Assembly: GCA_009103225.1 (NCBI GenBank)
Contig: RHPI01003516.1
Location: 1-21,784, forward strand
Length of the DNA: 21,784 nucleotides
Direction of reading: 5' to 3'
DNA from: Chlorokybus atmophyticus
Taxonomy: Eukaryota; Plantae; Mesostigma and Chlorokybus algae
The translations under genes and the position numbers were made by a program. The notes below the pieces were generated by a model. That model did not search any database. It was not told the DNA's origin and was given only the letters and a program-made list of their open reading frames with translations. The stretch's first letter is position 1, and each line of letters opens with the position of its first letter. This document shows, in pieces, positions 1 to 21,784 of the stretch.

Positions 1-10
1 GCTCCGGGGC

Positions 11-73: not shown

Positions 74-80
74 ACGTGGT

Positions 81-889: not shown

Positions 890-1172
890 CCTTCAACGTC
901 AAGCCGTGTGCACCTCCCCACAGTCCCAAGGACAGTCCACCTTATAACAGTCGCGCGGACAGTCCACCTCACGACAGTCTCCAGGGCAGTCCCCGTCCAT
1001 CTGCCAAGAGAAAGAGAGAGAGAACAAGTGCCCCCATGTTTACACCCCCAGCTGAGAAGAAACGTCCCCTTCAGCCAGACACTCCTGCACGGCAAACTCC
1101 ACCAGCTGTGCGGCCACAAGCTGGAGAGGAGGCTCTAGCAGCAGCGCGTGATACAATTGAAGGTTTCAAGAA
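874..1172 (+). other. Possible coding fragment: Ser-Pro-rich with basic NLS-like KRKRER, apparently truncated at the transposon boundary
   Basis: The frame of ORF 1036..1356 is open from 874 and reads PHSPKDSPPYNSRADSPPHDSLQGSPRPSAKRKRERTSAPMFTPPAEKKRP...IEGFKN, after which the sequence becomes AT-rich repeat. Confidence 0.3.
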
Positions 1173-1218
1173 CACCGGTAATTCTGGACCCCCCGAATTT
1201 CTAAAAATTCAGCGCATT

Positions 1219-1835
1219 TGCCCTGAATACTCATCTGTTTTATGTGTGAATTCGCCACTTGCCTGGCTGCAGAGGTCGCTGTTACGATTGCTGATTATTC
1301 AGGCCAAATGCCCTGAATACAAGCAATGGATATTCACACGTTTTGGTCATGAATAATTGTAGTTGTCCATCTCGCACACAACCTCCTACATGTGAGTAGT
1401 TATTCACTCGCAACAGAACTGCATATTCAGTCTTCTTAGGTATACATGGTCCTAGACTTGTACCATGGCACCAAGTGATTATTCATACTTTATGTGCGTA
1501 AATATTTACAGCGCCTGCCCTCACACTAGGTCCTCCTTATAGGTAATTATTCACACGCATATTGGCTTAATGTTCACACATACTAAAGCTGTTTCAACAG
1601 CACATGTACCATACTAGCGAGTGATTATTCATACGATTTGTGATTAAATAATACAGCATATCTGCTCTCACACATAGTCCTATACATGAGTGGTTATTCA
1701 CCCATAGTATGGTTGAACACTGCTGCCTTTGGTTGATTTTTCACGCGAATTATAATTGAATAATACAGCACTTTTGCTCACACACACAGTCCTACATATA
1801 CTTGGTTATTCACTCACAGTTTGGTTGAATAATCA
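1219..1835. repeat. AT-rich subterminal repeat array (TATTCA/TGAATA in both orientations)
   Basis: 14 copies counted: 1224, 1296, 1314, 1331, 1350, 1401, 1424, 1480, 1548, 1626, 1695, 1757, 1807, 1825. 12-bp direct repeat TGCCCTGAATAC at 1219 and 1309. CACTA elements are known to have such arrays. Confidence 0.8.
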
Positions 1836-1989
1836 CTGCATCTTGCTATCGTCAACAGCTGTGACATAGCATAGCTGTGACATAGCACATAGCAATCAGT
1901 CCAGCCGGTGAATTTGGACAGCAATGTCAGCTGAATGGCAGCTGACTCGAACAACAAATTCACTGATGTCTACAATGTATCTCTGCTAC

Positions 1990-4496
1990 CTACTTCTTGC
2001 TGCCTCGACCACGCCCACCGCGCCCACCCCGCCCACCCCGACTGCCCTTCCCACGGCCCCTCCCGCGCTGTGTGGTTGTGCCTTCCTTTGCTGGCTCCCT
2101 CACCTTGATACTCTTCAGCAACCCAACAGGCCAAAGTAGCAACAAACCCGGCTCGCACTCTGCGCATACATCAACCACACATGAACTCAGCTGACTTGCA
2201 CAATGTTGAAACTGTTCATGCAATCGCATGCACACAAACGCGTTCACCTTTCAAGTGGGTCACTTGCACTCCAACCCCATCACGCTTGAAGCTGATTGGC
2301 AGAGGCACAACCTCTTCTTCCCCTGGTCCGGGACGTCTGGTCCTAGTGATGGGAAGACTGCGGCTGAACTGGACCACCATGTTGCCCTCTCCAATCTTCT
2401 TGCCATGAAACTTGTTGACAGGATTGATGTCGCTTACGTGCGCCTCCCCTACTGGTTCTTTGCGCCCGTTAATGAACAGTTGGACTTCACTGCCAACCTT
2501 CATCGTCGGTGCGGTGTCGTCTTTGTCGCTCAGCTCTTCCTGCGCATGCAAGTGACAAACACATCAAAAGGTACACACATACACAAATGTGATCTCTCAT
2601 ACAGCGCTTGCGAAGCGACCTGCCTTCTGCGAGTCGTTGTCGCTGTTATTGGGGCTGTTCCCCTCGCTGTCCGGGGCGCTGTCCTTGGCGCCATCTTCAC
2701 CGCTGTTCTCGCTTCTATCTGTCTCAGGCATTTCTGGATACGTTGGCTCATCCTGCGCGACAAGGTGACACGACGTGTTAACAAGCTTACAACCATCACG
2801 CAACGAATGCGTGCCTGCCGCAGGTGACAGTTTGTGTGCAGCCAGAAGAACGCAAGAAGCCCATAAGATCAAGTACATGGTGCTTTCATACCTCCTTTTG
2901 CTTGCCGCTCTTCTTCTCCAACACCGTCTCCTGCTTGCCAGTCGAGTGGCCTGCCTCCTGAGACTTGTAGGGAGCCGGTATCGAGCGAACAGTTTTGTTT
3001 GTTTTCTTTTTGGGCGGGCTTGACACCTCATCCTCCTGCCAACAGCATGAAGTCAGATGGTGAGCCACAACTCCGTGCATTGCCGCTCTATCAAGTCCAA
3101 TGCTGCGTACCTCACCAGACACTTTGCGCTTCCCTGAGCTGCTGTCACGCACATCAGCACCCTGCTTGGCACGTGCCTGAACACAACAGTCATGAACGAT
3201 CATGAACACATGTTTAGCAAAGTACAAGCAGGAGCGGCATCTGACCTGTGAACCAGTAGCAGGAGAACTTGAGGGTTGTGGTGCAGTGCCTTCCTTGTTA
3301 CCTATCGCATACACAAGGCACCGATCACAAAAGCCTGCATATACACACAGTACTCCAGCAGCTGCCTGCGCGCGCAAGACGCGGCTCACGCTGCGAGGTG
3401 CCATTTCTGTCGTCGCTGGCGTCGCTGGCGGGATGTGAACGCGTGGGCGCCGTGCAATTACAAGGGGTCATCATACACACCACACAACCTGCATACATAA
3501 GGCACCATCAAATACAAAGCATCGTTCTCAACACGACATTGACAAAGCCAACTTTGTGCAAACTGTAGGTCACCCTCTGAGGTGGCATCCTCGTCGTCGC
3601 TGGCAGATTGCACTTCTTTTGACTTCTTGGGCTTCTTCTTGTTGGCTTTCTATCAAGCACATGGCAAAGGCACTCAAGACATGCACATCGCACAAACACC
3701 TTAGTCACTACATGACACACACCTTGTTGTTCTTGTCGCTAGGCCCTCCCCTGCGCCTTGGCACAAAGCCCCCCGCGAAAGCCTTCTCCATCATCTCCTT
3801 GTAACGCTTCCGACTCTTTTCTTTCTGCTTCTCTTTGTGCTTGGGGTTGCTGTATCCCTTTTTGTTGCCCAGATACTGTTGAATCTTCAAACGCGCCTAC
3901 CCACCAATGAAGAAGTTGTGAAGGCCAACACATGCAAAGCAAACTCCTCCCAGCTCAGACAATGCTGCCATATTGCATGACGGCTCATGTAACTGTGGGA
4001 AATTGCCAACCATTTGATAGGAGAGCTCTGGATTCAGCAGATGCCAGCATTTGGTTGCAAGAGCGAACTTGAATGGGTCCTGCTTCGTTTGAGTCTTCCC
4101 CGGCATCATGCGACAGTACTCGTAGCAAATCCGGCCTTTGTCGGCCAGCTTGGTGACCTTGCGACGATCACGGGCATGATGCTTCCCACGCCAATGTAGG
4201 ACCTTCAGTGCCTGCATAGTTTACATTGGTGCACTAGTACAACATGGGACGAAACAGACTTCGGCAGCAAGGTCTGACATTGATTGCGGATGCTTGATGC
4301 ATAAGCTCACTTTTAAGCAGACCATTGCTGTGGTCTCAAGATCACGCAGGTGAACAGTCGCCTCACTGGTTTCCCACTCATGCTGCAGCTGCTCATCAGA
4401 AGGACCACCAGCATTCTTCCCCCATATCTCTTCGTCCAAATTCTCCCATCCTTCGCTGCAGTTGCTGGACCGCCCACCCGACGTGGTGCCTGACAT
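1990..4496 (-). CDS. TnpA/Tnp1-like CACTA accessory protein, multi-exon, with C-terminal RGG tail
   Basis: Frame-consistent exons: 4496(or 4508)-4311, 4211-3945, 3896-3723, 3649-about 3553, an uncertain exon near 3440-3365, 3301-3246, 3176-3111, 3035-2892, 2752-2603, 2539-2248, 2159-1990. The C-terminal VGEAHVSDINPVNKFHGKKIGEGNMVVQF...VTHLKECEPGLLLLWP resembles the Tnp1/En/Spm-like (Transposase_23-type) pattern VAxGxV...DP...HG..LG...V.V...WP. The protein ends RGRGRGKGSRGGRGGRGGRGRGSKK. Confidence 0.7.
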
Positions 4497-4689
4497 GATG
4501 ATGCCCTCCTGTAGATAGATCAAGCTTGCTTTACAAGTCAGTTGCAACCGCAACCCTAATCAACCTCAAGTCTTGGTTGACTCAAGTGACTGCAGGTTGT
4601 AAGCCATGTGGACTTGCTTGTTGACTTGTCACAGCAAGCAAACCATGTACCTTGCAAAAGAAGTGTCTCAAAGCTGCTTGCACAAAGGC

Positions 4690-4973
4690 GTGCTTGTGAA
4701 CTTGTCAAACTGGCACCCAACAAACCAAACACCCAGTACCTTATAGAGTAGAAGCTTCTTCAGCTTCTTTCCAGCTGAACACGAGAAAGGTAAGCCTAAC
4801 AGCAAGCTAGCAGGCAAATGGCATGTGCATGCACAACATGTGCTTGTGAACTTGTCAAACAGGCACCCAGCAAGCCAAACACCCAGTACCTTGTAGAGTA
4901 GAAGCTGCTTCAGCTTCTTGCCAGCTGAACACGACAAAGGTAAGCCTAACAGCAAGCTAGCAGGCAAATGGCA
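4690..4973. repeat. Tandem duplication, 134-bp unit with period 150
   Basis: 4690-4823 and 4840-4973 align with only scattered substitutions. On the minus strand each unit holds TTCAG|35 nt|GTACTG, an exon-like cassette. Confidence 0.9.
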
Positions 4974-5517
4974 GTCCAGAATGCTAGCGGCACAACACCA
5001 TGCTGTATTTGCTAATTGCAACGAAGTGACCCAGCATGCAACCACTAGAAAAGCAGTGCGACAAGACAGCTGACAACGCTCGCTCACCTCGCCACAGCAC
5101 CGCCGCCGCCAACACAACCAGCAAGTACGCCGGTGCTGTGGGACAATCAGTGCAATTCCCGGTGCGGAAATCCCTGCAATCAATGGAATGCAGTGATCGT
5201 TCGGAAAATCACATCAGCAATTGTGCTGGTCGGACACCAGTCGCGTCTCCGCTTGCTCCGACTGCAATAGGCCGCACGAGCAATTGCCGTGGAAATTGCC
5301 TTTTGTCGAAACTTTGATTGCCAAATGAACTCTATGCATGCATGTATATGGTATAGCAGTCATGTATGTTTATTGGTCGATACAAACCAAGCGAAATTAC
5401 ATTCTCTATTTTCGATGAAATCGTCCATGTCCGAGGACGGTGTCTGTGTGGCTTACCCCAAACTATAAGTAACCCTAACCCAAACATCCAATGCATGCTG
5501 GTAATTGTGCTGCAACA

Positions 5518-6475
5518 ATGGACCCCCCTGTACCCATGCGCACCATGAATGAGGCTCTAACGCAGGCGCTCCTCGCAGTCGGGCGGCGATTAGTGGGACT
5601 AGGTCAGGTCTTGACACAACCGTGGAACGGCTATGTGGACTCTGGCGATGCTCGCTATCATCAGGTATCTTTCTCGCTATTCATGGTGTGAGTTGCGTGC
5701 GCTATGTCACTCTGCATGCTGCTGACTATGCATGCCACTATGCATGTGCCATACTGTTGCGCATTGTGTGTACATGCGTATGCCTTGTGTGCGATTTGGG
5801 TTGAGTTTGCCTGTGTAGTGTGCATATGTTTGTCCTGCTATGATAGGAACGCCTATATATATGCACAGCTCTGATTGCTACCATGCAACACCCTTGCGCG
5901 TTACATGCCGTGCATGTCATGCCATGCTACTGCCTGAATGCGTGTCCAGTTCATGTCCATAACAATAGAGGCGCTGCCTATGCATTTGCATCAACTTCTG
6001 GCGCACGTTTATGAATGAATGCGATGCAACATGCGAGTTAACCTGTAAACTTGTTTGGCAGGTCCAATTATGCAATTGGGAGCTTTCAACTCGTGGAATT
6101 GTTCATCAGGCACCCATTGCGATTGCAGCTACTGTACAAACCGGTGTGTATGTGGCAGTCTCCATGCATGAGAACACTCCCTCGCCTCCTGATGCGCCTC
6201 TTCCTGCTTGCACTATCATTGACTCGGGCACCTATGGCGCTGCTGGCCTGCGCGTTGTGATCGAGTGCGACAACAATATTGCTGCACGCTGGAGTGTGTT
6301 TACTGGCTCCGAAGTCCCTGCACCTGGTGCAACGCCCGGTACCAGTCTCACATCAACTTGTAATGGAATTTTCCCCATCGCGACCCTCCTAGTGAACCTA
6401 GCGACTCTAGTGACTCGTCGCAATGACCATTGCTCTACACACACTTTGTTTGCCGTTCACTCTGGTTACCGCTGA
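5518..6475 (+). CDS. Hypothetical two-exon cargo protein (about 186 aa)
   Basis: ACAATG at 5518; exon 5518-5664 ends CAG|GTATCT (phase 0); acceptor TTTGGCAG| at 6061 joins in frame to ORF 6011..6475. AACCCTAACCC lies 40 bp upstream. No domain recognised, and the 3' end is uncertain. Confidence 0.4.
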
Positions 6476-6636
6476 GCTGCTCTGCTGGTAATTCTCCAAG
6501 TGTGGCTGTTACATGTGCAATTACTGATAACAGTGGGGTGTGTGCCTTTGTGCAACTTGGAGATCTAGCAGCAGATCAGCTCAGGCACAACCGCCACAAT
6601 TGTGTTCACAACAACATAGTGACTAGCAGATTAGTT

Positions 6637-6748
6637 ACATTACAACTATACTACACAACAACTACCAAACTACCACCAAACTATACAACTACACAACAAC
6701 AACAACTACACAACAACTATACAACTACCAAAACTACCACCAAACTAT
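6637..6748. repeat. Low-complexity (ACA/ACT/ACC)n tract
   Basis: ACAACTATACTACACAACAACTACCAAACTACCACCAAACTATA pattern, partly repeated. Confidence 0.85.
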
Positions 6749-7417
6749 AGGCCTTGTGCAAGGATGACGCAAAGATCTGACCTTGTACTTTGTATTACCT
6801 CATGGCCGTAGCACAGCCTGCAAGGCAAAGCGGGTTGCGCTCAAAACTGTTGGACACAAATCAGGCATGCAAGCGCCTAACACTGGCAGTAGAATTGCCC
6901 AAACATGCTGTTGGAAAAACCCCTCACAACTGCACTCACATATGCACAAATACAAGGTATGTTTGCGCAGCAGAAGAAGTGAACACGGACTTTTGCGACA
7001 CACGCGCGCATACACACACATGAGGGCTTACAATCAACTGCCCCAGCTGACTGGACACCATACACACACATGCACATTCATGTGATACGCATGCAAGGAT
7101 GCATTTATCTGTCCCTGTCGTCGCTGGAGCTCTTGCCAACTTCTTGGGCACCGTGACTGGCGGTGTCCTGCAAACATACTGCAGGCAATGCTCAACCTGT
7201 TGATAGCAGCTGTAAGAATGCCAAGACACCCAAAACACAGAGCCAAATACTTTGACCTGAGTCTCATCCACAAACACACCATGCCTGGCATGCGAGCTCT
7301 GGTTTACCTGCTGTCTTGGAAGCAGCCGGCTGGATCATCATACCCTCTGTTGAATGCATGCAAGCATCTGAGTCAAGACCAAATACCTACCTCATGTTCG
7401 ACGAGATCAACTACACT

Positions 7418-8375
7418 GGACCTAAAGCGACCGGCCATCGCTGAATGGTAGCTGTTTACCTGTGGATCACACACCGTAGTTAACCAACAGTAGAGTCAAA
7501 ACTAGAGCAGGGAAATAACTTTTGAGAGACACAATGCTAGCGCAAGCACACACAGAAAGAACACCCTTTTGCCGCAAGGCCACTGAGGGGTTATGCCCAA
7601 GGCTGCCCCAGCGGCTTGCAGCAAACAACTTTTGTGCCGCAGCACAGGTAAGGCCACTGAGCGGTTATGCACAAGGCTGCCCCAGCGGCTTGCAGCAAAC
7701 ACCGCACGCACACAAACACATGCATGGCATGCGCAAGGAAGCACGGCATGCACGTATCTGCTGTGTAGCCGATAGCGCTCCAGTATCGTCGCCGCCGCCG
7801 CCGCCGACGACGATGATCTTGCCTGCCGGCGCCGCCGCCGCCGACCTTGACTAAAATCTGCATGCGAAATGGCTGCTGTAACTCCAAAACCCTAAGTCCA
7901 TGACCTAAGTCCATGGACCTAAGCGACCAGCCATCGCTGAATGGTAGCTGTTTACCTGTAGATCACACACCGTAGTTAACCAACAGTAGGGTCAAAAATG
8001 GAGCAGGGAAATGACTCTTGAAAGACACAATGCTAGCGCAAGCACACACAAAAAGAACACCTTTTTGCCGCAAGGCCATTGAGGGGTTATGCACAAGGCT
8101 GCCCCAGCGGCTTGCAGCAAACAGCTTTTGTGCCGCAGCACAGGTAAGGCCACTGAGGGGTTACGCACAAGGCTGCCCCAGCGGCTTGCAGCAAACACAG
8201 CACGCACAGCACGCACACACACACACACATGCATGGAATGCGCAAGGAAGCACGGCATGCACGTATCTGCTGTGTAGCCGCTAGCGCTCCAGCATCGCCG
8301 CCGCCGCCGACGACGACGATGACCTTGCCTGCGCCGGCGCCGCCGCCGCCGACTTTGACTAAAATCTGCATGCGA
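7418..8375. repeat. Tandem duplication of about 450-460 bp (period 497), each copy with two internal ~70-bp subunits and a GCC-rich tail
   Basis: 7418-7867 aligns to 7915-8375, and most differences are transitions. Subunit AAGGCCACTGAGGGGTTATGCACAAGGCTGCCCCAGCGGCTTGCAGCAAAC occurs four times. Confidence 0.92.
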
Positions 8376-8502
8376 CGTATCTGCCCGAGTTTCTTGCTAG
8401 GAACTCAAGATCGCTGGCGCCGTCGCCACCGACCTCAAAGACTTCGCCGCCAACCACGGCAACCTCGCCGCCTCCCGGCCACAACCTACAACATGCCCGG
8501 GC

Positions 8503-8519
8503 GGTTAGGGTTAGGGTTA
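8503..8519. repeat. Short interstitial (TTAGGG)n / telo-box-like motif
   Basis: GGTTAGGGTTAGGGTTA; a second copy lies at 9129-9144, and each follows a homologous GCC-rich segment. Confidence 0.8.
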
Positions 8520-8565
8520 TGACATATGGCGAAACAGAGTCACAACAACATTCACCCAGTCCACA

Positions 8566-8905
8566 CCACAGGGCCGGTCTGAGGTCTTACAGACCGGCCC
8601 AGCTCCTCACCAACACATTCACAGAAAAACAAAACCACAAGGCAGGACACTGAGGTCTTACAGACCGTCCCAGCGACTCACCAGCACACATGCACAGAAA
8701 CACAAAAACAAGGCAGGTCACTGAGGTCTCACAGACCGCCCCAGTGAATCACCAACAGAATAACAGAAACAAAACCACAAGGCAGGTCACTGAGGGCTTA
8801 CATGCCGCCCCAGTGAATCACCAACACATGCAAATAACGGAAACCACAAGGCAGGACACTGAGGGCTTACATGCCGCCCCAGTGAATGACCAGCACACAT
8901 ACACA
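8566..8905. repeat. Minisatellite, 5 copies of a ~70-bp unit
   Basis: Unit ACAAGGCAGG(A/T)CACTGAGG(T/G)CTTACA..CCGCCCCAGTGAATCACCA starts near 8566, 8637, 8708, 8777 and 8846. The first copy forms a perfect 11-bp stem (8571-8581 / 8590-8600). Confidence 0.9.
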
Positions 8906-9128
8906 CACGCACGCGCACAAACAAAACATGCATGCAGGCAGGCTTGCACGTATCTGCCTAAGTAGCTCTGCATCAACCAAGGATGGCTGCCGCCGTCGCC
9001 GCCAACCTCAAGCACCTCGCCGCCGACCACGCCGCCCACAACCTTTATAACTAAAGACGCTGCCGCGGCCGACCAAGACAACCTCCCCGCCACCAACCTT
9101 GCAAACTACAACAACTTACAAAAACATA

Positions 9129-9144
9129 AGGGTTAGGGTTAGGG
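9129..9144. repeat. Short interstitial (TTAGGG)n / telo-box-like motif
   Basis: AGGGTTAGGGTTAGGG. Confidence 0.8.
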
Positions 9145-9521
9145 ATGCCGGCTATGGCGTCAAAGGTGATAGCCCATCACTGATGGACCATCACTGATTT
9201 GCTTAGGGTTTTGGTGTAGCGATCGAGCAGACAACTTGCAACTGGCAAGGCTGGGCGGCAAGGGCGGCGTTGTTGGCGAGGTCGGCGGCGGCGTTGGCTT
9301 CATTGCTGAAGTGCAAGTGTTGTGTTTTCGCTTGGCTGTTGTAGTTACTTCATTGTGGGTCCGAGAACCCTGGCGAGGTGGTTTCTTGCAGCTTCGGGTG
9401 GGCTGGCTGGAGGGTTTTGGCACTGCTTCCAACAAGGTGCAGCACATGCCGTGCTTGTCTTTGTTTGCATGCATGCCCGTTTGATCATTTCGCTAACTAT
9501 CAAAAGTTCATGTTGTCTATG

Positions 9522-9795
9522 TTGTTAGCCACCACTTGATGCTAACCAGAGGGGCGGCCTCGTGCGTAAGACCACCTCTTGCTCAGTATTAAAGCTGTTT
9601 TATTTGAGCATGCACTCTTGTTAGCCACCACTTGATGCTAACCAGAGGGGCGGCCTCGTGCGTAAGACCACCTCTTGCTCAGTTTCTAAGCTGTTTTATT
9701 TGAGCATGCACTCTTGTTAGCCTCCACTTGATGCTAACCAGAGGGGCGGCCTCGTGCGTAAGACCACCTCTTGCTCAGTTTTCAAGCTGTTTTAT
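9522..9795. repeat. Tandem repeat of a 96-bp unit, about 2.9 near-identical copies
   Basis: Copies start at 9522, 9618 and 9714 (TTGTTAGCC(A/T)CCACTTGATGCTAACCAGAGGGGCGGCCTCGTGCGTAAGACCACCTCTTGCTCAG...). Confidence 0.95.
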
Positions 9796-9941
9796 AGTTT
9801 TCATTGTGGCTGAGGCTAAAGTGTGCATGCTCAGGCTTGTCTGCATGCTCAAATAGGCAGCCGTGTGTGTGTGTGCATGCTCATGTTGCTCAACTATGTG
9901 TGCTTGTTTTTGGCTGTGAGGCTTTCCTCAGGTCGTTCATC

Positions 9942-12900
9942 ATGTCCAAGCGAAAGCTCGTTCCCCTTGGCCAGTTTAAGCCTGCAGGTAATAAGTAATG
10001 TATGCTTGTTCAGCATGATTATCGTTAACATGTGGTAACACTGGTCATGCACACAGACAAGAAGCACAAGGGTTCAGCGCACAAGACGGAACCTGCTAAG
10101 AAGGAAGCTGTCCTGCAGAAACCCTGCAAGAAATCAAGTAATGTAGCGCTGTTCCAGCTGACCATACCAACGCATGCTCACTGCGGTTGTTTGCCACCAT
10201 TGTTGCAATAACACTGTCTATTGCAGACCTTTTTGACACGACAAAGGCTCAGTTGCTGGAGGGGTTCAATAATTGGCGGAAACTAAGGGAGGAGGAGAAG
10301 GCTGGGAAGGCGAAGATGTCCACAGAATACAGTTGGGATGTCGTGGTTGAAGTTATGCAGAAGAACCTGAATGAAGATCCTCGCTTGCTTGAGCTCGACA
10401 AGAACTTGCAGATCTGCCTACGGAAGTTCGTGGAGGACCAGCTCAGGCTATGTGATCCGGAGGCAGCTGCTAGGGGTATGGACCTCGGGCATTTTGGCCT
10501 TGAAGATGTTGTTACCGATAATGACATCCATGAAAAAACGAAGACAAAGTGGGGAAAGAAATTCTCTGACTGGAGGAAAGCGAAGGCGAAGAGCAAGAAC
10601 CTCATGTCATGGGGTGAGCTGGTGGTCTTTATCAAGAAAGCGCTGTGCAAACCAGACTTGGCTTCCCTCAATCGAGAATGGAGGCTCAAGCTACGGCAGT
10701 ATGTGGAGGAAGAGCTAAGGCTATGTGATCCAGAGGCAGCTGCTATGGGCATCGACATCGGGGAATACGGTCTTGACTACGAAACAGAGGCGCCCAAGCA
10801 GCAAGTGGAGGCCCAAGCCAAGCAGCAAGCCGACGCGGAGGCCAAGCAGCAAGCGGATGCTGAGGCCAAGCAGCAAGCCGACGCGGAGGCCCAGCAGAAA
10901 GCTGAGGCCCCACCCAAGTCCCAGACTGCACAAATGCAGAAAGGGCCTCGACCTGAAGCCGGTACCTCTGCTTCTGCTGTTGAACCAGAAGACGGTCTAC
11001 CTCCAGCAGAAACGGAGGGCGAGTTAGAGCTGGTTGGGCTGTTGCATGATAAACACCGGCTTCGGCTTTTCGATGCCTATGCAGATGGGAATTGCTTCTA
11101 TGCCTGCCTTGCCCAGTCGCGCCCTCGCGTGAACGCTGCGTGCTTGACACGCGCGAACGCAGCGGACAACGGGTCTTTCTGGCGAAGCATTGTGCTGGAC
11201 AATGGCAAGCAGCTGCCAACAAGAGAGCAAGCGCAAAAGCTTCGGAAGATCTGTGCTGAGCAGGTCAACCTTTATTGGTTGCTGGAGTATCGCAACTACG
11301 GGGCCTGTGGTGACATGGGCTAGGATTACAAAAAGATGGCCAGGAAATATGGCGTAACCAGGGCACTTAACAAAAAGCAACTCAAGACTAAGCAAGATGA
11401 AGACAACGCTGTAGAGGCTCTGCAGAAAGTGATCGCTGAAGATAGCGTTTATGCCGATCAACTGCAAGTGGCGATCATGGCGCACGCTCTTGGCATTCAC
11501 ATAGGTACTGTGCAGCTCACTGAGGTTGCCGACGAGAAGCAGTACTGCTGGGAAGCAGAGCACAAGGGCGGCCTCATCGAAGGCGATGACGGGAGGTACT
11601 ACACAGTGGATGCCAAGGGAGAGAAGCATTCCGTCAAACCTGTAGTGGTGGTTGGCGAGGATGTTATCGATGTGGCTGGCCATATAATCATTGGCAACAC
11701 GGATCCAAGCAAGCCCAGCGCGCATTACATGTCTGTTGGTGATGCAAATGGTATACTCTCTTGGCAGCGCAGCGACATGCCACCAGAAGTCCTGCGCTGC
11801 ATGTACCCTGCAGATGCCGAGCCCCAGCCCCAGCCCCAGCAGCAAGCCCAGCCCCAGCCCGAGCCGCAGCCCCAGCCCCAGCCCAAGCAGCAAGCCGAGC
11901 CCCAGCCCAAGCAGCAAGCTGATGCCGAGGCCAAGCAGGCCAAGCAGGAGGCCAAGCAGCAGGCCAAGCAGCGGCAGGAGGCGGAGGCCAAGGCCAAGCT
12001 GGATGAGGACAATGCCAAGCAGCGGCAGGAGGAGGCCGAGGCCAAGCAGAGGCAGGAGGCGGAGGCCAAGGCCAAGCAGGATGAGGCCAATGCCAAGGCC
12101 AAGCAGAGGCTGGAGGCCGAGGCCAAGCAGCAGCAGGAGGAGGCCAAGGCCAAGCAGGATGAGGCCAATGCTAAGGCCAAGCAGGAGGAGGCCGAGGCCA
12201 AGCAGAGGCAGGAGGCGGAGGCTAAGGCCAACGAGGCTAAAGACCAGCAAAGGCAGGAGGCTGAGGCCAGGAGCCAGCAGGAGGCTGGCGCTATGCAGGT
12301 TGATGCCGCTGTTGAGGAGGAGGCTGATGCTATCAGTGATATGTCAATTGACATCAGCACCGCAGCAACCAGTGACACCAGTGACACCAAGAAACGCAGA
12401 CGCCGCCCGTCACGCCGCCAACAGCGAGCTGCTTTGCAAAGGGACAACACGCCTTCCGGTGCTTTCCAGAAGCTGCATCGTGTGCAACAGGGGGAGCGCA
12501 CCGTGGACGAATATCACGCGCAGTTTGCACAATTGTGCGGGGTGGCAAACACCTGCGTTGAGCTGGTGCCTAAGGCCCTTAAACTACAACTGTTTCTCCA
12601 GGGACTCAGGAAAGTAGTGCGCATTGGCGTGCCCAAGGGTCCTTGCAACCAAGATTGGAATGCTGATCAGTTCGATTTGCTTGTGTCGGCTGCCAAGACT
12701 TATGAACGGACCTTGCTTGTTAAACAGCAAGCACACCTCCTAGATCGTTCAAAGTTTGAGTTAGGCAAAGCAAGGCCAAGCAGGTTGCAGAAATTGGAAC
12801 GACTGGAACAAATCAGCAGTCGTCGGGAGGGCAAGAAGCTGGCACATCAAGCTGCATATCAGCGTGAGCAGGAGATGATAGCTGCACAGGAGACCCTTGA

Positions 12901-13054
12901 GCAGCAGGAGCAGCTGCGTAAGCAGCTGAAGCGGCAGAAGGAGGAGGAGCGCCAACAGATAAAGCGAATGGCTCAGCAGGGAAAGGAGCAGCGGAAGCAG
13001 CGGCGGGAGCAGAAGGAAACACAGCAGCAGCAGCAGCCGCAGCAGCAGAGGTAG
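9942..13054 (+). pseudogene. Multi-domain protein: duplicated N-terminal module + OTU cysteine protease + Q/P and EAKAKQ coiled coil + retrotransposon Gag capsid-like domain; one in-frame TAG
   Basis: Exons 9942-9987, 10057-10137 and 10227-13054 are phase-consistent and total 985 codons. ORFs 10187..11323 and 11336..13054 share a frame across TAG 11321-11323. OTU motifs: ADGNCFY (Cys 11093), YADQLQVAIMAHALGIHI, AHYMSV (His 11723). Gag-like segment KLHRVQQGERTVDEYHAQFAQL...LFLQGLR at about 12460-12610. Confidence 0.75.
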
Positions 13055-13287
13055 CTGTAACAGCAACCTCGAGGTTGTTCACTTCACGACTACCAGCTTT
13101 GCAGGTTGGAACACGCATGGACACTGCTTGTACAATAGCAAAAGTTGCAAGTATTGCTCTCGTTAACATCTGCTGCTGTTGTGTTTGCAGGAGCCTCTGC
13201 TACCTCACCATGCCTGTGCAGAATCTATCGTTCTCGCAGCGTAGGGCCAACCTCATGTGTAAGTGTATCTATTAATTCAAGCTGAAC

Positions 13288-13455
13288 ACAGAGGCATCTT
13301 CTAGATTTAGCCCTCTGTTTTCTCATTCCCGATTCGGGTCTGAGCTCATGCTGAATGCAGAGGCATCCTCGTGAATAAGCCCTCTGCTTGCTCATTCTGT
13401 CTTTGTATGCAGAGCGTAGGGGCATCACCCTGTGATTAAGCCCCCTTCTTGCTCA
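13288..13455. repeat. Three degenerate copies of a hairpin motif (AGAGG...CCTCT) also found at 9548-9771 and 14458-14490
   Basis: ACAGAGG/CCTCTGT (13288-13318), GCAGAGG/CCTCTGC (13357-13387), AGGGG/CCCCT (13418-13446), with loop consensus CATCCTCGTGA(A/T)TAAG. Confidence 0.75.
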
Positions 13456-14177
13456 CTTTCTTGCCCCCTTCTTGCCTGTGCCACCTGCTTTCGCTGCTAA
13501 CCAGCAGGAAGTGGAGGTGTTCTTCCAGGTGACATGACAGGAGCTTGACATGACAGGATAGAGGAAAGACAATCTCGTGGTCTTTGTACAGGATAGAGTG
13601 TGTTAGCTTTAGCTGCCTGTCTGTGTGTGTTGAAGGATTGCAGCAAAATGCAATCACCCACATCTGCCTGTCCTTGTATGCTTAGGATCATCCCGACTGC
13701 ACGCGGGTTCACTGCGAACGCACCGCCTTGGGAGCCTTGCTGGCTGCTGTTTGTATGCAGTCACGGCGCACAGGTAAGTGTGACAGCACTTGTAGAGTGG
13801 AGGTGGTAACAGAAGTCCGCAGTAAGTCATGAGGTATGCATCGCTCTCGTGCATATACTAACTGTGATTGCATTTCACCTTCTCAACCACCTCCAGCCTC
13901 TGCATGGAACTTGTTGGTCGCGATCTGCTCCAGGGCTTTTGGATGGACGGCGGTTGTACCTGCCGCTGGGGTTGGGTTGCTGTTTGTGATATGGCAACTC
14001 AGGCTGGCAGTCCTTCTCCCCCCACCCACCCGAGAGAACACCTCTTGCTGCTGTTGACATGCCGCCCTCGTACTGGCACGCCCTCGTACTGGCCCCGGCA
14101 ACCGCTGAAACCGGGCATGTGTCCAAAGATTGCACGCAACCAAAGGCATGCGCACAGCAACCTAGAAGTTCTCCTTC

Positions 14178-14386
14178 TCCGCCCACCCACCCGACACAAA
14201 ACCTCCTGCGGGTTTACTGCGAACGCAGGATGTGGTCCTGCAGAGCCGTCTCGCGCAAGTCACGTACTGTAGACTTTGTGCACATGCTCAGAGCCTCTGG
14301 TTCATGACTTTCGCGAGTCAGCTTTGGTTGGACCATACCCTGCGTTCGCAGTGAACCCGCAGGAGGTCTAGTCTCGGGTGGGCGGA
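14178..14386. repeat. Inverted repeat / MITE-like foldback
   Basis: 14202-14229 and 14339-14366 are reverse complements with 1 mismatch in 28. Outer TCCGCCCACCC(ACCC)GA / TCGGGTGGGCGGA extends the arms. A third 20-bp core copy lies at 13703-13722. Confidence 0.85.
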
Positions 14387-14605
14387 CGGCGCAGCAGGGC
14401 ATGAAGGTGCTCTGGAAGAGACCTTGCCCAATAGGTCAGTCTTTCCCGTGCTGGCAAACAGAGGCATCCTCGTGATTAAGACCTCTTGCTGACTTTATTG
14501 CATCGCTCATTCTGTTGTTGGGTTTGAGTTCAGGCTAACAAAGTGGCCAGCAATCAAGAGCTACCTCTACCTTTCAGTAAAAAGGAGGGTAATCAACAGT
14601 GAAGC

Positions 14606-16321
14606 CTATTGCTCCAGCAACAGCCTGCCTACATGTTCGGAGTAAGTTGGTGGAATGGCATTCTTGACTTCCGATTCCGCATCCATCCACTCCACCTGCA
14701 TGGCAGACTGCCACCCTGCAATCGTGCCACGGCAGGATGCTTGGCCGTACACCGGGTAAATTTGCCTCTCCCCAGGTAGCAACTGCCGGCGCTGCTCCGG
14801 GTGGGTGGCCAGCTCTCCAAGTGCACAACCAGTGTGGTTGCATTTCAAGTCTGAGTGCAGTGGAGGGTTTGTCTCGAAGATGCGATGACGATACACATCC
14901 AACTTGAACATGGTGCCACACAGCTTCAGGTGAGTTGTCATGTGTCCTGATGCGCCTGCGACATTCTCTATCACCCATGGCTTGCCGCTCAACTGCAACT
15001 TGGCTCTTATGGGGTCAATCAGGTTTACGTGCTCCCATCGATTGCCGTACGCGGAGCGCTGTGTAGTGGGAATGGCCCCACTTAGAGCTTGACATGGAGG
15101 ACTTGCCCACACCGCAGCGTATGCTGTCGGGTCAGCGTCCATTGCATCCATCTGGCAGAACTTGAATGGGTATGACGGTTGTGGCTTGTTGTCGATGCCC
15201 TCAACATCAAACCCTGCCCTGTACAGACCCATGGCTACACCACCATCGCCGCAAAAGAGATCAAGTGCGCGCGGCCTGCAACGTCTTCCGTTTGAGTCTA
15301 TTGGTGTGCGTGTGATCAGAAGGGGTGGGGGCTTGGGCCATCGATCGAGCTCTCGACCAGGCAAGTCTTGCAGTTTCAGACAGCTTTGACCACCAACACG
15401 AACCATTACGTCGTAACCCTCACGCACAGATGCCATGTTCCAGTTCTTTATCAAGATGTGGTGCAGCCGTGGGTCCACAACGAAATCGTCGTACTTGATG
15501 GTATGTTTTCCTGAGCCACATGTTTGCCTGAGCCGGTGCTTGCATGAGCGTGCGCATGTAAATACTCTGCAGTATACCTGTGTTGGCATCAAAAGTGATG
15601 ATGTGGCCTGCATACCAGGAGCTCATTCCTGGCCAGTACACCACAACGCGGCATGCTACCAAAGACTGCCCCTCATCAACAATCTCCTTCCGCTAAGCAG
15701 CCAGTGTCGCAACATCGTCGACAACCGCGTTCCCCTTTGGCATTCAAGAGTAAGTTGGTCATGCATGCAAGCGCTGTTTTGCTGTTTGCAAGGGCAGTTC
15801 AACTCGACAACCGCCAAGCAGCCAGTGTCGCGACATCGTCGACAACCGCGTTCCCCTTTGGCATTTAAGAGTAAGTTGGTCATGCATGCAAGCGCTGTTT
15901 TGCTGTTTGCAAGAACAGTTCAACTCACCCTGTTGTTGACATCGTCTTCGATTACAGTGGACTTGCCGCGACCGTTGCGCACGAGCTGACGTCGAACCAC
16001 ATTGCACATCTGCCCATTGTGATATGCTCCAGGCCGTGCCCAAGGCAGGTGATTCATGGGCTCGCCGTTCCACTCAAACTTGGAAAGCGAGCACTGCAGG
16101 CGAGTGCACTCCTCCCAAAAGAAATCTGGCCTCATGCATTGTGCCAGCAGTCTGCATTGCCTCACATTGTCCCCCCTTGCCTTGTGGTGCCAGCAGGCTT
16201 CATAGAAGCCATACTGCTCACTGTACAGCTTGCACTTCTCTTCATGCTGTTGCAGACGTCTGTTGTTGCCATTCCTAACCAAGTATGCTTTGCAGAAGCT
16301 ACACACTTTGACGCCGCGCAT
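14606..16321 (-). CDS. C2HC zinc finger - Tudor - C5 cytosine DNA methyltransferase fusion (470 aa)
   Basis: Exons 16321-15929, 15692-15578 and 15510-14606 total 1413 nt in one open frame with GT-AG introns. Motifs: I LDLFCGDGG, II GIDN, IV WASPPCQ, VI IENV, VIII RHRIF, X NAIPP. Tudor: LVACRVVVYWPGMSSWYAGHIITFDANTG|KHTIKYDD. Zinc finger: CSFC-x15-H-x3-C. Confidence 0.9.
15693..15928 (-). repeat. Tandemly duplicated intron (period 121) inside the methyltransferase gene
   Basis: The two copies align closely. The internal acceptor (TAG>TGG) and internal donor (GTGAGT>GTCGAGT) are mutated. Confidence 0.85.
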
Positions 16322-16611
16322 GCTGGCGCCACGCTACCTGGCACACAAACCCTAGAAGCTAATGCACTGGACGGAAGAAGAAAAGGAGCATGTACGCAAA
16401 TTGTGGAGCATATCCGGATTGACTTTCTGGCTTGTTTTGAATCGGGATTGGATGTGTCCTAAACCCTTAATTTACAGTAGGCAGTCATGACGGTGGCGAC
16501 GGCGGCGGTGTCAGCGGCGGCAGCGTGCCTGCAGGTCTTTGCTTTGGCTGTATGGAAGTTGATTGGAAGTTGCTTGCAGTATGTTGGCTGACTGCTTTTG
16601 ATGTTTGTAGC
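16322..16611. promoter_or_regulatory. Putative bidirectional promoter shared by the methyltransferase and transposase genes
   Basis: Divergent ATGs are 290 bp apart. Candidate 5'-UTR introns lie at 16535-16610 (+) and 16395-16338 (-), leaving a core of about 16400-16480 that contains CTAAACCCTTAA. Confidence 0.55.
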
Positions 16612-18109
16612 ATGAGCTACTTTCGCAGGTGTTTTTGCCGCGACTGCAAAGGGAGCAAAGTGTTCACACACAACCACATTAGAAGGGCTGAATATCATGA
16701 AAACTTTGGCAAAAACATGTGGTGTGGCACTCCAGAAGCTGTTGCTCCTGAATACCGTGATCGACTACAACCCCATGAACTTGAAGAAGCTGATGCTGCT
16801 GTTGCTGCTGCATCCTTACACATGTCGTCAGGTACAAGAGCAACTTCTCTACAGCTGTGAATCTATACAACAGGCTGTCTGATCATTGATCTGGCTTGCC
16901 CCAGGTGAAGCTCTCCATGACACCGAACAATTGCTAGTTGGGAACGACGCTACTGAACATGTTGACACAGGCACGCCGTTGCAACCGAGTGTTGAATCTC
17001 CTTTCAATGTTGCAGCCAACTTGCAACCAGCAGGTACGACCTGACTTGCGTGGCATGTTGACATTGCGGATGCTGTGCCTCTCATTGTTCATGTGCCACT
17101 AGACTCATTGCAGCTGGCAGGTTGTGATCCGTGTGCTCATGAAGGACAATGTGCTTATGGAGAACAACGCGGATCTCACCCAGCATTTTGTGGAATTGAG
17201 AATGCTACATTGCAAGAGCATTAAGGTGCCAGAACCAAATTATAAATGGACAAGTAGAGCCTGAGACGCCAGTGTACTGCACCTCCACTGCAGAGCAAGT
17301 CGATGCGGAGCAAGGTGATGCGGAGCAAGGTGATGTTGCCGGCGAAGACCAAGACTATGAAACCGATGTGGAATCGCAGCCGGACGAGGCTAAATGCGTT
17401 GATGATGCCATGCTACTTGACAAGGTGAATGCTGCGTTGCTGGATAATGCAAGCAACCCTGTTGTTTTCGGCTCTCGTACAACCCCTCTAGGCATTTCCA
17501 TGCTGCTATTGGTTCTGGCGCAGCTACATCGAATACCCTTTAATTTCATGAATAAACTGCTCAGGTTGGTGGGCAAATTACACTGCTGAATGCTGAAACA
17601 TCAGCCTGTTCAGAACTGATGTGTTTCTGTGTGCCAGGTTGTTGCGTGGCATCCTCTTGCCTAAGGAGAATAAGATGCCAGGCAGCATGCACGAGCTATT
17701 GAAATGCCTTGAAGGCCTCAACATGGGCTTCCACACATATGATGCCTGTCGCTGTGATCACATGTTGTATTGTGGCCGACATGCCAACAGGATACTTTGC
17801 AAAGGTGAGCAATTGTTGCAAATGTTCACTACAATGGGATTTGATTAGCATGTCCCATCAGCATACGACTTGCTTATGCAGTCTGCAAGGCCCCTCGCTA
17901 CCGCAACATAGGAGGTAGACAAGTTGCATGGAAGATTGGGCGTTACTTTGACGTGCCTGCTGCGCTGAGGGCTCTGTACCTAAAACCTAGTGTTGCTGCG
18001 GAGATGATGGCGCACACAAATCGAAGTCAGGATGGGATTATGCGATCTATACACGGTAACATTGCCAAGTTCAGTGGTAAATGAGGCACGACTGTGTGCA
18101 TGATTGTGT

Positions 18110-18340
18110 TGGTGAGCGGCTGGGGCAGTCCAATGCAAGCCCTCAGTGTCCGTGCCTTGTGCTTTTGTGTGCGTGGCGCTGAGGCGGCATGTAAGACCTC
18201 GGTGTCCTTGCCTGTGTTTGTTTGTGTGTCGGCGAGGTGCTGGGGCGTTATGTAAGACCTCAGTATCCAGCCTTGCGATTGTATGCATGTTTGAATGTGT
18301 TGTGGGGCTGGGGCAGTTGGTCGTAAGCCCTTGGTGTACT
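18110..18340 (-). repeat. Four copies of the ~70-bp minisatellite family, inverted, inside a transposase intron
   Basis: CTG(G/A)GGC...GTAAG(A/C)CCT(C/T)(A/G)GT(G/A)T(C/A)C units near 18136, 18191, 18252 and 18323 are the reverse complement of the 8566-8905 unit. Confidence 0.8.
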
Positions 18341-21300
18341 TGCTGCTGTCAGACTCGCCAATGTTCAAGGACACTGAACAACGCTACAGCCGGTTTGCCA
18401 AAGAACCACGCAATGTGCGCCTAGCGATGTTCATCGACGGGATGAGCCCGTTCAAAGATCCGCACAAAGGTATAAAAGAGCATTTTTCTTCCTGTATGCT
18501 CGTTGCAGTGTAACTGTACGAATGGCAGCAAAGGGTTTGTTGAGTTGCAGGGAACTATGAGTTTTGGGTTGTCACAATCTCAGTGTTGAACCTGCCCATT
18601 GCCAAGATGCACAAGACAGACACTACATTTCTAGCTGCTGTTATCCCTGGACCCAAACAACCAGAGAATCTACAGGCTTATCTCAAGCCAATTATTGACC
18701 AGTTGGGAGATCTCTGGGAAGGTATGGTTTCAACGCAGCTAGGATAAGCAGCTTCCATTACTGCAGTCATGCCTGACAAATGCGCATGACTGAGGCATGT
18801 AATCTGCTGGCATTTGTTGTAGGTATAGACATATATGACAGCCACCGCGACGCAGTTTTTCGTTGCAGATCTATTCTGGAGATTGTAATCCATGATTACC
18901 CAGGTACTCAAGCAGCAGCAGTGTTTGCACTTACTGTTATCAGTGTCTGACTGTATCTGTATATCGGAATGTCCTTGCAACCATGGTTGTGGCTACTGAA
19001 GTACATCATGTTGGTTGCGCAGCTCTGGCAAAAGCTGCCTTGCAGATGGCGCATGGAGCCATCTTTGGCTGTTCAAAGTGCGAGTGCAGTGAAGAACATG
19101 TGGAACTTCTCAAAAAGGTGATCTATCAAGGCCACCGCCGGTACCTACCGGATGACCATCCTTACAGAGTTGATGAGCGTTGGCCGCAACCAGAACACAG
19201 ACCTCCACCACCCATGCGGACTGCAGAAAGCGTGTACAGGTGAGCAATCTCAATTGATTGCGCATTCGGTTGCAGAACATAGGTATGTCAGCAATGCATG
19301 CCATGTGATCAGGTATGCTATGACATCTTGCAACAGCAAGCGTCCACTGCACTCTAAGAGACATCCTTCAAAGACCTCCGGCATCCTTGGACTGAGCTGT
19401 TTTCACGACCTTCCATATTGGCTACCGTTACAAAAATCTGTCAAAGGTCATGTGGTTGGCCCTATGCACATTTTTGCCAACCTGGCAACCAACTTTGCAA
19501 ATCTCCTAGCTGGCTTGCGCGACAGCATCGAATCACGAGAAGATCTGCAGCAGCAAGGCCGCATGCCTGAACTCTGGCTAGAGGTACGTATGTAGTCGGC
19601 CTCGTTGACATGTGCCATAGTTGGATTTAACCAAGGACTTGAACCTATGTGCTGCAGGCAGAGATGAAGATGAAGGATGGAAAGGAAGTCGCAGTCAAGG
19701 TAAAACCCCAGGCTCCATAGACAATCACAGATGTAGGACTGGTTGAGCAATTGTTCTCCGGCGTGAGGGTTTCAAGCACTTTCGGCTCGAAACTGCAGTC
19801 TTTTACAAAGCATTTAGGTGAGATAGCCGTTATATGTTTTGTGTTTACGCTAAAGCAATGATTCTCCATGCATGGAACTTTTGACATGGAGCATGCAGGC
19901 TCGATGAAATCGCACGACAAGCACAACTTATGGTCGGTCGTTTTTCAGTACGTGCTGCGCTCTGCACACGACATTGGAGAAGATCAGAAGAGAACCATCT
20001 TCAAACTATGCGACATCTATCAACGGCTGACTGCATTGGAAGTAAAGCAGTCACACCTCGAAGAATTGAAGGTTGGCTTTAATAACACTTTACTCTGCAT
20101 GCCCAGCTCCTATGGCATGCGTAGCTTATTACTTAGTGCAGGTGCTGGTGCATGAGGCACAGTCTGAAGTGGAGCTGTTCTTCCCGCGAACTTCTCTCAC
20201 AATGATGCTGCACCTCCTTGGCCATCTACCAGAGCAGTGCATGTGGCTTGGTCCGACGCGTGACCACTGGGAGTGGGCACATGAACGCTTTATGCAGTGG
20301 GTGAAGCGCATGATATTTGCAAGGCAGCATGTGGAAGCAAGCATCTGCAAAAGGCAAGTTTTGTGTGAGCCCACTGAGAGTTACGTGCAAACTTTCCACA
20401 TTGTTTGCCTTGTTCAAGTGCCAGTTGCATCTGCAGATACTCTATCCAGCTCATGCTGAACACTTACATGGACGCCTTGAAGCGACTTTTCTTCGACATC
20501 AGTTTGCGATCGGGCAAGCAACGAGATGATGACGACTATGTGCTCTGCGAACGGAGACACCGTATTGAGGTTGGGGATAAAGATAGTAAGACAAGGCAGG
20601 AGCTCGAGTGGTGGTTGGCTGAGAATGACGATGAATACAGGCTGTTAAAAGAGTAAGTTGCTTTGGGAGTTGCTGTTTTGTACGTGATGTCCAACGCGCA
20701 GACAGTATGATTCATTTATGGGTTGCTGCTACACAGAGAGTTCAGTCGGGAGGTGAACAAACGCAGGATGGCAAGGGAAAGGGCTCAAAAACAAGGACAT
20801 GTCGTGGCAAAGGACATGGAGCATATGACTGAGCTGCATCACTGGCGTGGACCTGCTAGGGAGCTTACAAAGCACGAGATGGAGCTGTTGAGCGGTCCAA
20901 TCTTTCCAAAGTACATCAAGCGATACTTCAGAGCACGCTACAAGGACATCGGTCAGTTCAGAGCAGAGGAAATGGAGAAGAAACTCCGCACCATGGACTG
21001 TGGCGTGTTTACCGTTGGGCGTGACTCAGATGACCCAACCAAGAAGATCCATCGGTATGGCAGGGTGCAATCTTTTGATGTTGTGGTGATAGCTGGTCGG
21101 GAGCACCAGCTGCTTAGAGCTAGGTGGTACATGAGCAACCAAGTCCAGCACAGTGGAGGATTTGCAATCCTATGAAAAGACAAGCCCCGCTTTGCAGAAC
21201 AAACCTACCTTGATTGCAACCTGGTAAGTGGATGTGTTGCAATCGTTTTGGCGTGTGCTTGGTGTGATGATAGTAAATTGAAATAGTAGTATGAAAATGG

Positions 21301-21739
21301 CTGATGAATATCCCTTCTTGCTGGCAGGTCAAGGGCCAGTGGTTTGAGGGAATTGATCCCCATGACAACAAAGTAACAGTAGCGCTTGTTAAAGACAGGC
21401 GCAGTCTCATGCGTCGACGCATGCACCGGGACACTCCGGTAAGAGGAGAGTTAACAACGTTGTCCATTGTCCAGAATCTGGATGTCCTCATATATCCTGG
21501 GTTTTGGCATCACATACAACCATCTTGTGTACTTGGTGCAGGGTGCCCTAAGCGAAACCAATAGCGCCTCGAGCGAGGTGTCATGGACCACACGCCGCGA
21601 CTGGCATTTTGAGTACAAGAGGTACTGTTTGCGATTGTGATGCCTCATATCCCTACTGTGAGACTGTAGACCTGGCCACTGAACCTTTGTTCACAGGATG
21701 AGACCGAGACTGGAGCTGGATGCGTTGGAACATCGGGAA

Positions 21740-21784
21740 CATGAAGACTACTGCTTTGTCTGCAAGGATGGGGGCACCATATCT
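21740..21784 (+). other. N-terminal part of a PHD finger (HEDYCFVCKDGG), truncated by the window edge
   Basis: Translation after acceptor TTCACAG| (21696) gives RMRPRLELDALEHREHEDYCFVCKDGGTIS. This matches the typical PHD start (acidic-C-x2-C-x2-GG), but only two of the zinc ligands are visible. Confidence 0.65.

Follow-up and report, generated by a model that had tools for sequence, protein, structure and literature searches.

A probable CACTA-type transposon of the alga Chlorokybus atmophyticus with a predicted Tudor-DNA methyltransferase gene as a passenger

DNA methylation is the main weapon of the host against transposons, and elements that carry methylation enzymes of their own reverse this logic of host defence. 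To our knowledge, such enzymes have so far been described from retrotransposons, as Dnmt3-type methylases, and from fungal DNA transposons, as TET demethylases. The former comprise SymbioLINE and DIRS elements in Symbiodinium and DIRS-type elements in Klebsormidium (de Mendoza et al. 2018, PMC5890265), all of them class I elements in which a eukaryotic Dnmt3-type domain lies inside the retroelement coding region. The latter include KDZ/Plavaka, EnSpm and other fungal DNA transposons that carry TET/JBP dioxygenases (Kojima 2025, PMC12730594). A third set of relevant elements belongs to the CACTA/En-Spm group (CMC superfamily) of plants and algae. Like the locus described here, these elements combine a transposase of the Tnp2 type, including DUF4218, with a terminus that opens with 5'-CAC and with short repeats arrayed next to it; they are also large and carry passenger genes in their interior. 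In plants, CACTA and Mutator elements can also harbor ULP1/SUMO-protease domains that adjoin the transposase or are fused to it. The literature search turned up no paper in which a CACTA element encodes a DNA methyltransferase, and the pairing of a Tudor domain with a C5 methyltransferase was not found described for any DNA transposon.

The sequence analysed here (hereafter the window) comprises 21,784 nt of Chlorokybus atmophyticus (assembly GCA_009103225.1, contig RHPI01003516.1, positions 1–21,784, forward strand). Positions 1173–21784 probably cover 20.6 kb from the left end of a single large, recently decayed CACTA/EnSpm-type transposon with a methyltransferase gene and an OTU/Gag-like gene as passengers. 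Like the DNMT-carrying retrotransposons, one host of which is also a streptophyte alga, it would be a mobile element with its own C5 methyltransferase; in contrast to them, it is a class II element, and its enzyme is of a minimal phage/giant-virus type, fused to a Tudor domain and encoded by a separate spliced gene. The fungal TET/JBP transposons are likewise cut-and-paste elements, some of them CACTA-related, with a DNA-modification enzyme as cargo, but their enzymes remove or oxidise 5mC whereas the enzyme in the window is predicted to write it, and the host lineage differs. Compared with CACTA/En-Spm elements, the window element has a CACCG end, no recognisable TnpA, a distant transposase and a cargo of predicted chromatin enzymes. 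The OTU-like gene resembles the ULP1-type cargo of plant elements as a putative protease directed at ubiquitin-like modifiers, but represents another protease family.

The insertion boundary at 1173 is real, as the initial annotation had proposed, with public contigs breaking exactly at 1172|1173. The contig graph branches at this point: one public contig starts exactly at 1173, and another (run X2) matches 958–1172 and continues with 176 nt unlike the window, beginning GGCCCACGAGGAGC... This continuation is unrelated sequence, yet it keeps the reading frame of the flank, and the contig therefore looks like an empty site that gives the expected right flank of the insertion. The flank itself (1–1172) is repeat-rich, showed no Pfam match and contains an open frame (874–1172, + strand) broken by the insertion. 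The left terminus of the element (1173–1192, + strand) opens with CACCGG; its CACCG has only CAC in common with the canonical CACTA or CACTG. The terminal 20-mer occurs once in the window (both strands, ≤3 mismatches) and is absent from the JGI metagenomes. A total of 79 (run X1) and 61 (run X2) public contigs align to positions 1–6000 in identity bands from 99+% down to <90%, and the diverged paralogous contigs count for further copies. Inside the terminus, a subterminal array with a TTATTCA core in both orientations occupies 1295–1832 (repeat families D11 and D17; TRF period 112), with longer repeat units of ~112–147 bp in the same region. Ten of the 12 TTATTCA matches in the window fall within these ~540 bp, compared with 1.8 expected for the whole 21.8 kb, and the motif array seen at first reading is thus upheld.

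At the right side of the window, a gene of many exons starts at an ATG at 16612 and runs on the + strand past the window end (16612–21784). It is a predicted CACTA-type transposase gene of the TnpD/Tnp2 type, in agreement with the initial annotation: Pfam Transposase_21 was matched at 18349–18459 and 19022–19237 (29.5 and 28.8 bits; cut-off 28.6) and DUF4218 at 20148–20369 (38.5 bits; cut-off 27), and the exon chain agrees with tblastn searches using public relatives. The protein is distant from these relatives (49 bits at best for the exon searched), and its DG and HDYP blocks are present. The exon at 19314–19583 (+ strand), compared with 17 public relatives, contains a conserved D-P-M-H block that reads G-P-M-H in the window (Gly codon at ~19455) and has a 3-residue insertion; the Asp is kept in 13 of 13 relatives (alignment A2). 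A suspected loss of a catalytic Glu in the block MHIF was dropped because the relatives have Phe at the same place. The last visible exon (21698–21784, + strand; from a reading of the frame) ends in CFVCKDGG, a possible start of a PHD finger. Only the first Cys-x2-Cys of the Cys4-His-Cys3 pattern lies inside the window and Pfam found no match in the 29 residues of this exon, and the PHD reader claimed earlier is not confirmed within the window.

The methyltransferase and transposase genes are arranged head-to-head, with their start codons (ATG at 16321 on the − strand and at 16612 on the + strand) separated by a divergent intergenic region of 290 bp (16322–16611). A search for RNA runs that cover the window region returned none. 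Splice sites, homology and fold together define the former as a gene for a Cys/His-rich region, a Tudor domain and a C5 methyltransferase (14606–16321, − strand). From frames and splice sites, three exons (16321–15929, 15692–15578 and 15510–14609, followed by a stop codon at 14608–14606) are predicted to join in one frame (393+115+902 nt, 470 codons) across two GT-AG introns of 236 and 67 nt. The C5 methyltransferase is well founded: the predicted protein matches public C5 methyltransferases at E = 9e-57, contains the motifs FCGDGG (I, FxGxG), SPPCQ (IV, PCQ), ENV (VI) and AIPPTYSE (C-terminal IPP block), and keeps 21 of 21 invariant columns in an alignment of 77 sequences. Its AlphaFold model (pLDDT 89.6, pTM 0.88) matches only the folds of DNMT3A/B, M.HaeIII and DNMT1 (Foldseek probability 1.00; TM by query 0.55–0.62).

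The Tudor domain of this gene is split by an intron, and its pattern runs on across that intron. Exon 2 alone encodes 38 aa, the N-terminal half of the domain, and matches PDB 7de9_A, an RDM15/PDS5C-type plant Tudor, at E = 0.0035, which supports the Tudor reader proposed in the initial annotation; Pfam Tudor models gave weak matches in this region (E = 0.07–0.18). The Tudor of RDM15 is specific for H3K4me1, and the counterpart in the window is fused to a DNA methyltransferase. The zinc finger of the initial annotation is a weak candidate, recognised by the Cys/His pattern of its exon. Just past the stop codon, an out-of-frame remnant, GFTVDYPPFY (14577–14612, − strand), corresponds to the tail G(F/Y)T(V/I)DY that ends P0001 and P0003, the two nearest public relatives of the enzyme. 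In the window this tail lies one frame off, which places a 1-nt frameshift at ~14610, 12 codons before the ancestral end of the protein.

The second passenger is an OTU-like, coiled-coil and Gag-like gene (10227–13054, + strand, with a provisional start), formed by two open frames (10142–11320 and 11324–13051) that share one frame and are separated by an in-frame TAG at 11321–11323. A Gag-like domain at 12455–12610 (+ strand) was identified with Pfam PF03732 (Retrotrans_gag; E = 1.5e-5, 25.6 bits, cut-off 24.1, in 12386–12823 with the low-complexity part removed), and the Atlas features agree. The stop-interrupted, probable OTU protease domain (10994–11743, + strand) was delimited from Atlas features (0.93; 178 shared features), and its Cys motif (~11090), loop and His motif (~11725) were recognized by eye. 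Its best PDB match, on the Cys motif, is at E = 0.18; the matched chain is entered under the name 'RNA-directed RNA polymerase' and is, in our reading, an OTU domain of a nairovirus. Pfam returned no match for the OTU part, and the word-index homology search was blank for the OTU and the Gag parts alike. The Gag-like half of the initial annotation is therefore kept, while the OTU half is weak. AlphaFold, run on the Gag-like part as a single sequence, gave a model that was set aside (pLDDT 53), and N-terminal exons proposed by eye from ~9942 were rejected, the frame being lost. An in-frame GT-AG intron at 11264–11425 that would skip the stop is possible on paper and unlikely, and the TAG is read as a nonsense mutation because the stretch that would be skipped resembles coding OTU sequence.

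The region between the subterminal array and the OTU/Gag-like gene holds few recognizable features. The open frames at 2219–4496 (− strand), which had been called a TnpA-like gene, gave no Pfam, Atlas or PDB match, and this designation is unsupported; maximum-length spliced-ORF models, including one for this stretch, were dropped as unreliable since they picked spurious exons. Positions 4690–9795 are non-coding, repeat-rich filler with ORFs lacking Pfam matches, tandem arrays (150-bp ×2, ~500-bp ×2, 69-bp ×4.8 and 96-bp ×2.9) and two telomere-like TTAGGG stubs. The filler, ~6 kb in all (3.5–9.8 kb), may include nested insertions. Its composition bears on an alternative that we consider unlikely, namely that the locus is composite: the terminus and array (1173–1832) would stem from one element, perhaps non-autonomous or truncated, the gene pair at 14.6–21.8 kb from another, and nested repeats would lie between them. 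Consistent with this are the non-coding stretch of 3.5–9.8 kb, with its arrays and stubs and without recognisable genes, the breaks of diverged paralogous contigs at ~5124, 5698 and 5774–5821, and a right end that lies, with its TIR and the TSD, beyond 21784. However, the window shows no further end that would mark two elements side by side: the 1173 terminus has no inverted counterpart (≤3 mismatches), TTATTCA/TGAATAA motifs form no second or mirrored cluster, and the empty-site continuation does not recur. Unless the locus is composite, these absences place both passenger genes inside the element that begins at 1173. Most of what the initial annotation described is upheld, and its proposal of a cargo-carrying CACTA element of >20 kb is supported in part, by the boundary, the transposase, the 290-bp region shared with the methyltransferase gene and the lack of a right end or mirrored array in the window; its TnpA-like gene is unsupported.

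Phylogenetic analysis grouped the methyltransferase in one clade with P0001 and P0003 (SH-aLRT 98). The contigs encoding these two relatives also encode topoisomerase II, ribonucleotide reductase, U-box and PLOD-type genes and are giant-virus-like; the wider family occurs in phage contexts, with 498 relatives in IMG/VR. The predicted enzyme is accordingly placed with enzymes of giant-virus-like contigs, inside a phage-type family. This placement, together with the private C-terminal tail common to the window enzyme and its two relatives, would also fit an endogenised giant-virus relic, or a virus-derived host gene, that merely sits beside the transposase and is not cargo. Such a status is very improbable for the gene as it stands, which has two spliceosomal introns, one of them splitting a plant-type Tudor domain, has no other viral gene nearby, and lies inside the insertion starting at 1173, only 290 bp from the start codon of the transposase.

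The copy in the window looks damaged in three genes, by the stop in the OTU frame, the frameshift in the methyltransferase and the Asp-to-Gly replacement in the transposase. With these lesions it probably cannot read histone marks, write 5mC or remove ubiquitin, the three activities inferred in the initial annotation. The damage also argues against purifying selection on the window locus, and the least credible reading, a domesticated cluster in which the transposase and its neighbors are host genes with a cellular function and no longer mobile, to which the long open exon chains and only light damage might point, conflicts with this loss of stop-free frame, frame continuity and motif as well as with the precise insertion boundary with its empty-site-like contig and the many diverged paralogous contigs.

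For one large transposon with passengers, a mode of action of its intact members can be outlined. The transposase would cut at the CAC... termini, and a protein encoded by the element would bind the TTATTCA repeats in the manner of TnpA in maize En/Spm. Both the transposase and the methyltransferase would be expressed jointly from the shared intergenic region of 290 bp. Through its Tudor domain, the methyltransferase would be tethered to histone tails with methylated lysine (by analogy with RDM15, H3K4me1), and the enzyme would write 5mC in the tethered chromatin, whereby the element would alter its own epigenetic state. The copy in the window would rely on intact copies, if the family is active. 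As a whole, the proposition that intact members are autonomous, and that a single divergent promoter in them serves both a transposase and a de novo methyltransferase guided by histone marks and obtained from a giant virus, is tentative, and we regard it as possible rather than likely.

If true, a class II element would methylate DNA in host chromatin or its own and thereby control its own silencing. The DNMT-bearing retrotransposons would then have their first counterpart among DNA transposons, and the TET-bearing transposons of fungi their mirror image. A cut-and-paste transposon of an early-diverging streptophyte alga with a virus-derived methyltransferase coupled to a reader would add a third, independent case, and would tie gene flow from giant viruses to the evolution of transposons. 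The protein itself would be a compact natural 'reader plus writer' fusion, and its targeting rule (histone mark and DNA context) is directly testable. Among its closest enzymes, the small orphan C5 methyltransferases (~210 aa) encoded by phages and on giant-virus-like contigs, identity to the window enzyme is 36–52%, all motifs are common and the minimal architecture is equal. An MBD-like insert (DUF7028) is present in P0001 and P0003 and missing from the window enzyme, which differs from the small enzymes in its introns and N-terminal reader domains.

The window contains a real CACTA-family element, partly visible and slightly decayed, whose Tudor-methyltransferase passenger gene is unusual. 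The region is eukaryotic sequence of ~50% GC with short GT-AG introns. Its left end was examined by placing public contigs of two sequencing runs, X1 and X2, on positions 1-6000. A 549-nt X2 contig agrees with 958-1172 and then continues for 176 nt that are unrelated to the window, and another contig begins precisely at 1173. Translated in the flank's frame, the 176-nt continuation stays open (…IEGFKK-AHEEHRKAV…), and the 549-nt contig resembles a target site, either empty or paralogous, that the element has split. The breakpoint at 1172/1173 coincides with the left terminus placed at 1173, by reading the sequence alone, in the initial annotation. The contigs on 1-6000 (79 from X1 and 61 from X2) range in identity from >99% to <90%, which shows that there are other, diverged copies. 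For both runs, the best contigs differ from the window by ~0.3-2%, chiefly by transitions, and an exact copy of 1-6000 is absent from the contigs of both runs. The flank (1-1172) is itself repetitive: contigs that match it only in part are numerous, as are loose ends, the 27-bp x3 array at 911-992 differs in length between the runs, and palindromic ACCATGCATGGT-like motifs recur. The landing site of the element is probably another repeat.

The subterminal array described next to this terminus is also present: 10 of the 12 TTATTCA occurrences in the window, with both orientations represented, fall within 1295-1832, where chance would give 1.8 in the entire window. They are embedded in longer repeat units of ~112-147 bp. 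The window contains no second copy of the 20-nt terminus (either strand, up to 3 mismatches), no second TTATTCA cluster and no sequence matching the empty site of the X2 contig, implying that the element starting at 1173 does not end inside the window.

A multi-exon transposase gene runs on the plus strand from an ATG at 16612 past the window end. It has two Pfam Transposase_21 matches, both barely over the gathering score, and a DUF4218 match. An exhaustive HMMER search with the exon at 19314-19583 recovered only 17 relatives (top 49 bits), and tblastn with these relatives confirmed adjoining exons, which bears out the proposed TnpD gene. The D-P-M-H-I-F motif found in 13/13 relatives of an alignment of this exon reads G-P-M-H-I-F in the window and is accompanied by a 3-residue insertion, which points to damage to this transposase copy. 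The final visible exon reaches the window edge with the residues CFVCKDGG, compatible with a candidate start of a PHD finger. Inside one transposase intron, a 61-bp x2.5 array (18101-18302) represents, in inverted orientation, the 69-bp unit repeated x4.8 in the filler at 8565-8897 (pairs I1-I9, at most 85% complementary). The minus-strand ORFs at 2219-4496, previously labeled TnpA-like, matched nothing in Pfam, the feature-based Atlas or PDB.

The minus-strand METHYLTRANSFERASE gene, with its ATG at 16321, and the transposase gene point away from each other, and only 290 bp separate the two start codons. Its three exons sum to exactly 470 codons: exon 1 (16321-15929) of the METHYLTRANSFERASE gene is Cys/His-rich, exon 2 (15692-15578) encodes the first part of a Tudor domain, and exon 3 (from 15510) completes this domain before a minimal C5 methyltransferase. 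The Tudor domain is interrupted by a 67-nt GT-AG intron; intron 1, also GT…AG, entirely contains a 121-bp tandem duplication (95%, 15690-15926) that doubled its length. By itself, exon 2 matches the 66-residue chain 7de9_A (E = 0.0035), which we take to be the H3K4me1-binding Tudor domain of Arabidopsis RDM15/PDS5C. The methyltransferase part matches public PF00145 proteins at E = 9e-57 and retains all invariant columns of a 77-sequence alignment, and its predicted model (pLDDT 89.6) resembles DNMT3A/B, M.HaeIII, DNMT1 and one prophage methyltransferase. The Tudor and methyltransferase assignments therefore stand, while the exon originally read as a zinc finger has no database match.

The wider methyltransferase family consists of small enzymes of ~210 aa, with 498 relatives on IMG/VR contigs; two gene contexts inspected within this wider family look like phage. 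In a quick IQ-TREE analysis the window enzyme clustered (SH-aLRT 98) with its nearest public relatives, P0001 and P0003, whose contigs carry topoisomerase II, ribonucleotide reductase, U-box and PLOD-type genes and look like giant virus. The C-terminal tail G(F/Y)T(V/I)DY is private to these two proteins. Its counterpart in the window, GFTVDYPPFY, lies just past the methyltransferase stop codon, shifted one frame, indicating a 1-nt frameshift 12 codons before the ancestral end. An MBD-like insert of P0001 and P0003 (Pfam DUF7028, E = 2e-5) is absent from the window enzyme. In both proteins (P0001 encoded at L002:2372-3184, P0003 at L001:10001-10843) this insert (YxSPxGxxFRS) occupies the expected target-recognition domain region, and it could be a methyl-DNA reader inside a viral methyltransferase.

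The OTU-Gag gene comprises two plus-strand ORFs (10142-11320 and 11324-13051) in one frame with a TAG between them. A DGNC Cys motif, a ADQLQVAIMAHALG loop and an AHY His motif flank the TAG, and this part looks faintly like an OTU domain: its Atlas feature score is 0.93 and its top PDB match, presumably a nairovirus OTU domain, has E = 0.18, with no Pfam match and a blank word-index search. Downstream, a long Q/E/A/K-rich stretch precedes a Gag-like region (12386-12823) that exceeds the Pfam Retrotrans_gag threshold with the low-complexity part cut away. Of the two proposed identities, Gag is thus retained and OTU is tentative. The N-terminal part (10340-10780), without a database match, contains an internal duplication of ~90 residues with a conserved LRLCDPEAAA motif (86 nt, 81% identity, 273 nt spacing). 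Immediately upstream of the OTU-Gag gene is a 96-bp x2.9 tandem array (96% identity, 9522-9795). The core motif of this array is found again at 13289, 13358 and 14459, in the stretch that separates the two convergent cargo genes.

The methyltransferase and OTU-Gag genes are considered cargo chiefly on the grounds of position: they are bounded by the verified left end on one side and the transposase gene on the other, no end signal interrupts the sequence in between, and the methyltransferase gene stands head-to-head with the transposase gene. Three lesions were found in the window copy, which is probably not autonomous. By analogy, the element would encode a de novo methyltransferase guided by its Tudor domain. 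A full-text literature search found no description of a CACTA or any other cut-and-paste element with a C5 methyltransferase. The nearest published cases are retrotransposons bearing DNMT (PMC5890265, where DNA transposons that encode a DNMT are noted in marine viruses as well), fungal DNA transposons bearing TET/JBP (PMC12730594), and a survey of fusions between chromatin domains and transposons (10.1101/2021.11.30.470311).

Repeat-rich filler occupies 4.7-9.8 kb. Within it, ~500 bp are duplicated in tandem at 7425-8420 (92-94% identity, families D5 and D14), and two 40-nt segments that form an imperfect inverted repeat across 3 kb (5470-5509 and 8480-8519) bear telomere-like stubs (CCCTAA x2; TTAGGG x2-3) at their outer ends and may delimit a nested element with telomere-repeat ends. 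In all 1-kb bins, including the flank, CpG is depleted, with an observed/expected ratio of 0.42-0.86, while TpG+CpA exceeds expectation (1.3-1.6), both values being for the window only; this pattern would fit cytosine methylation of the repeat-rich region over a long time.
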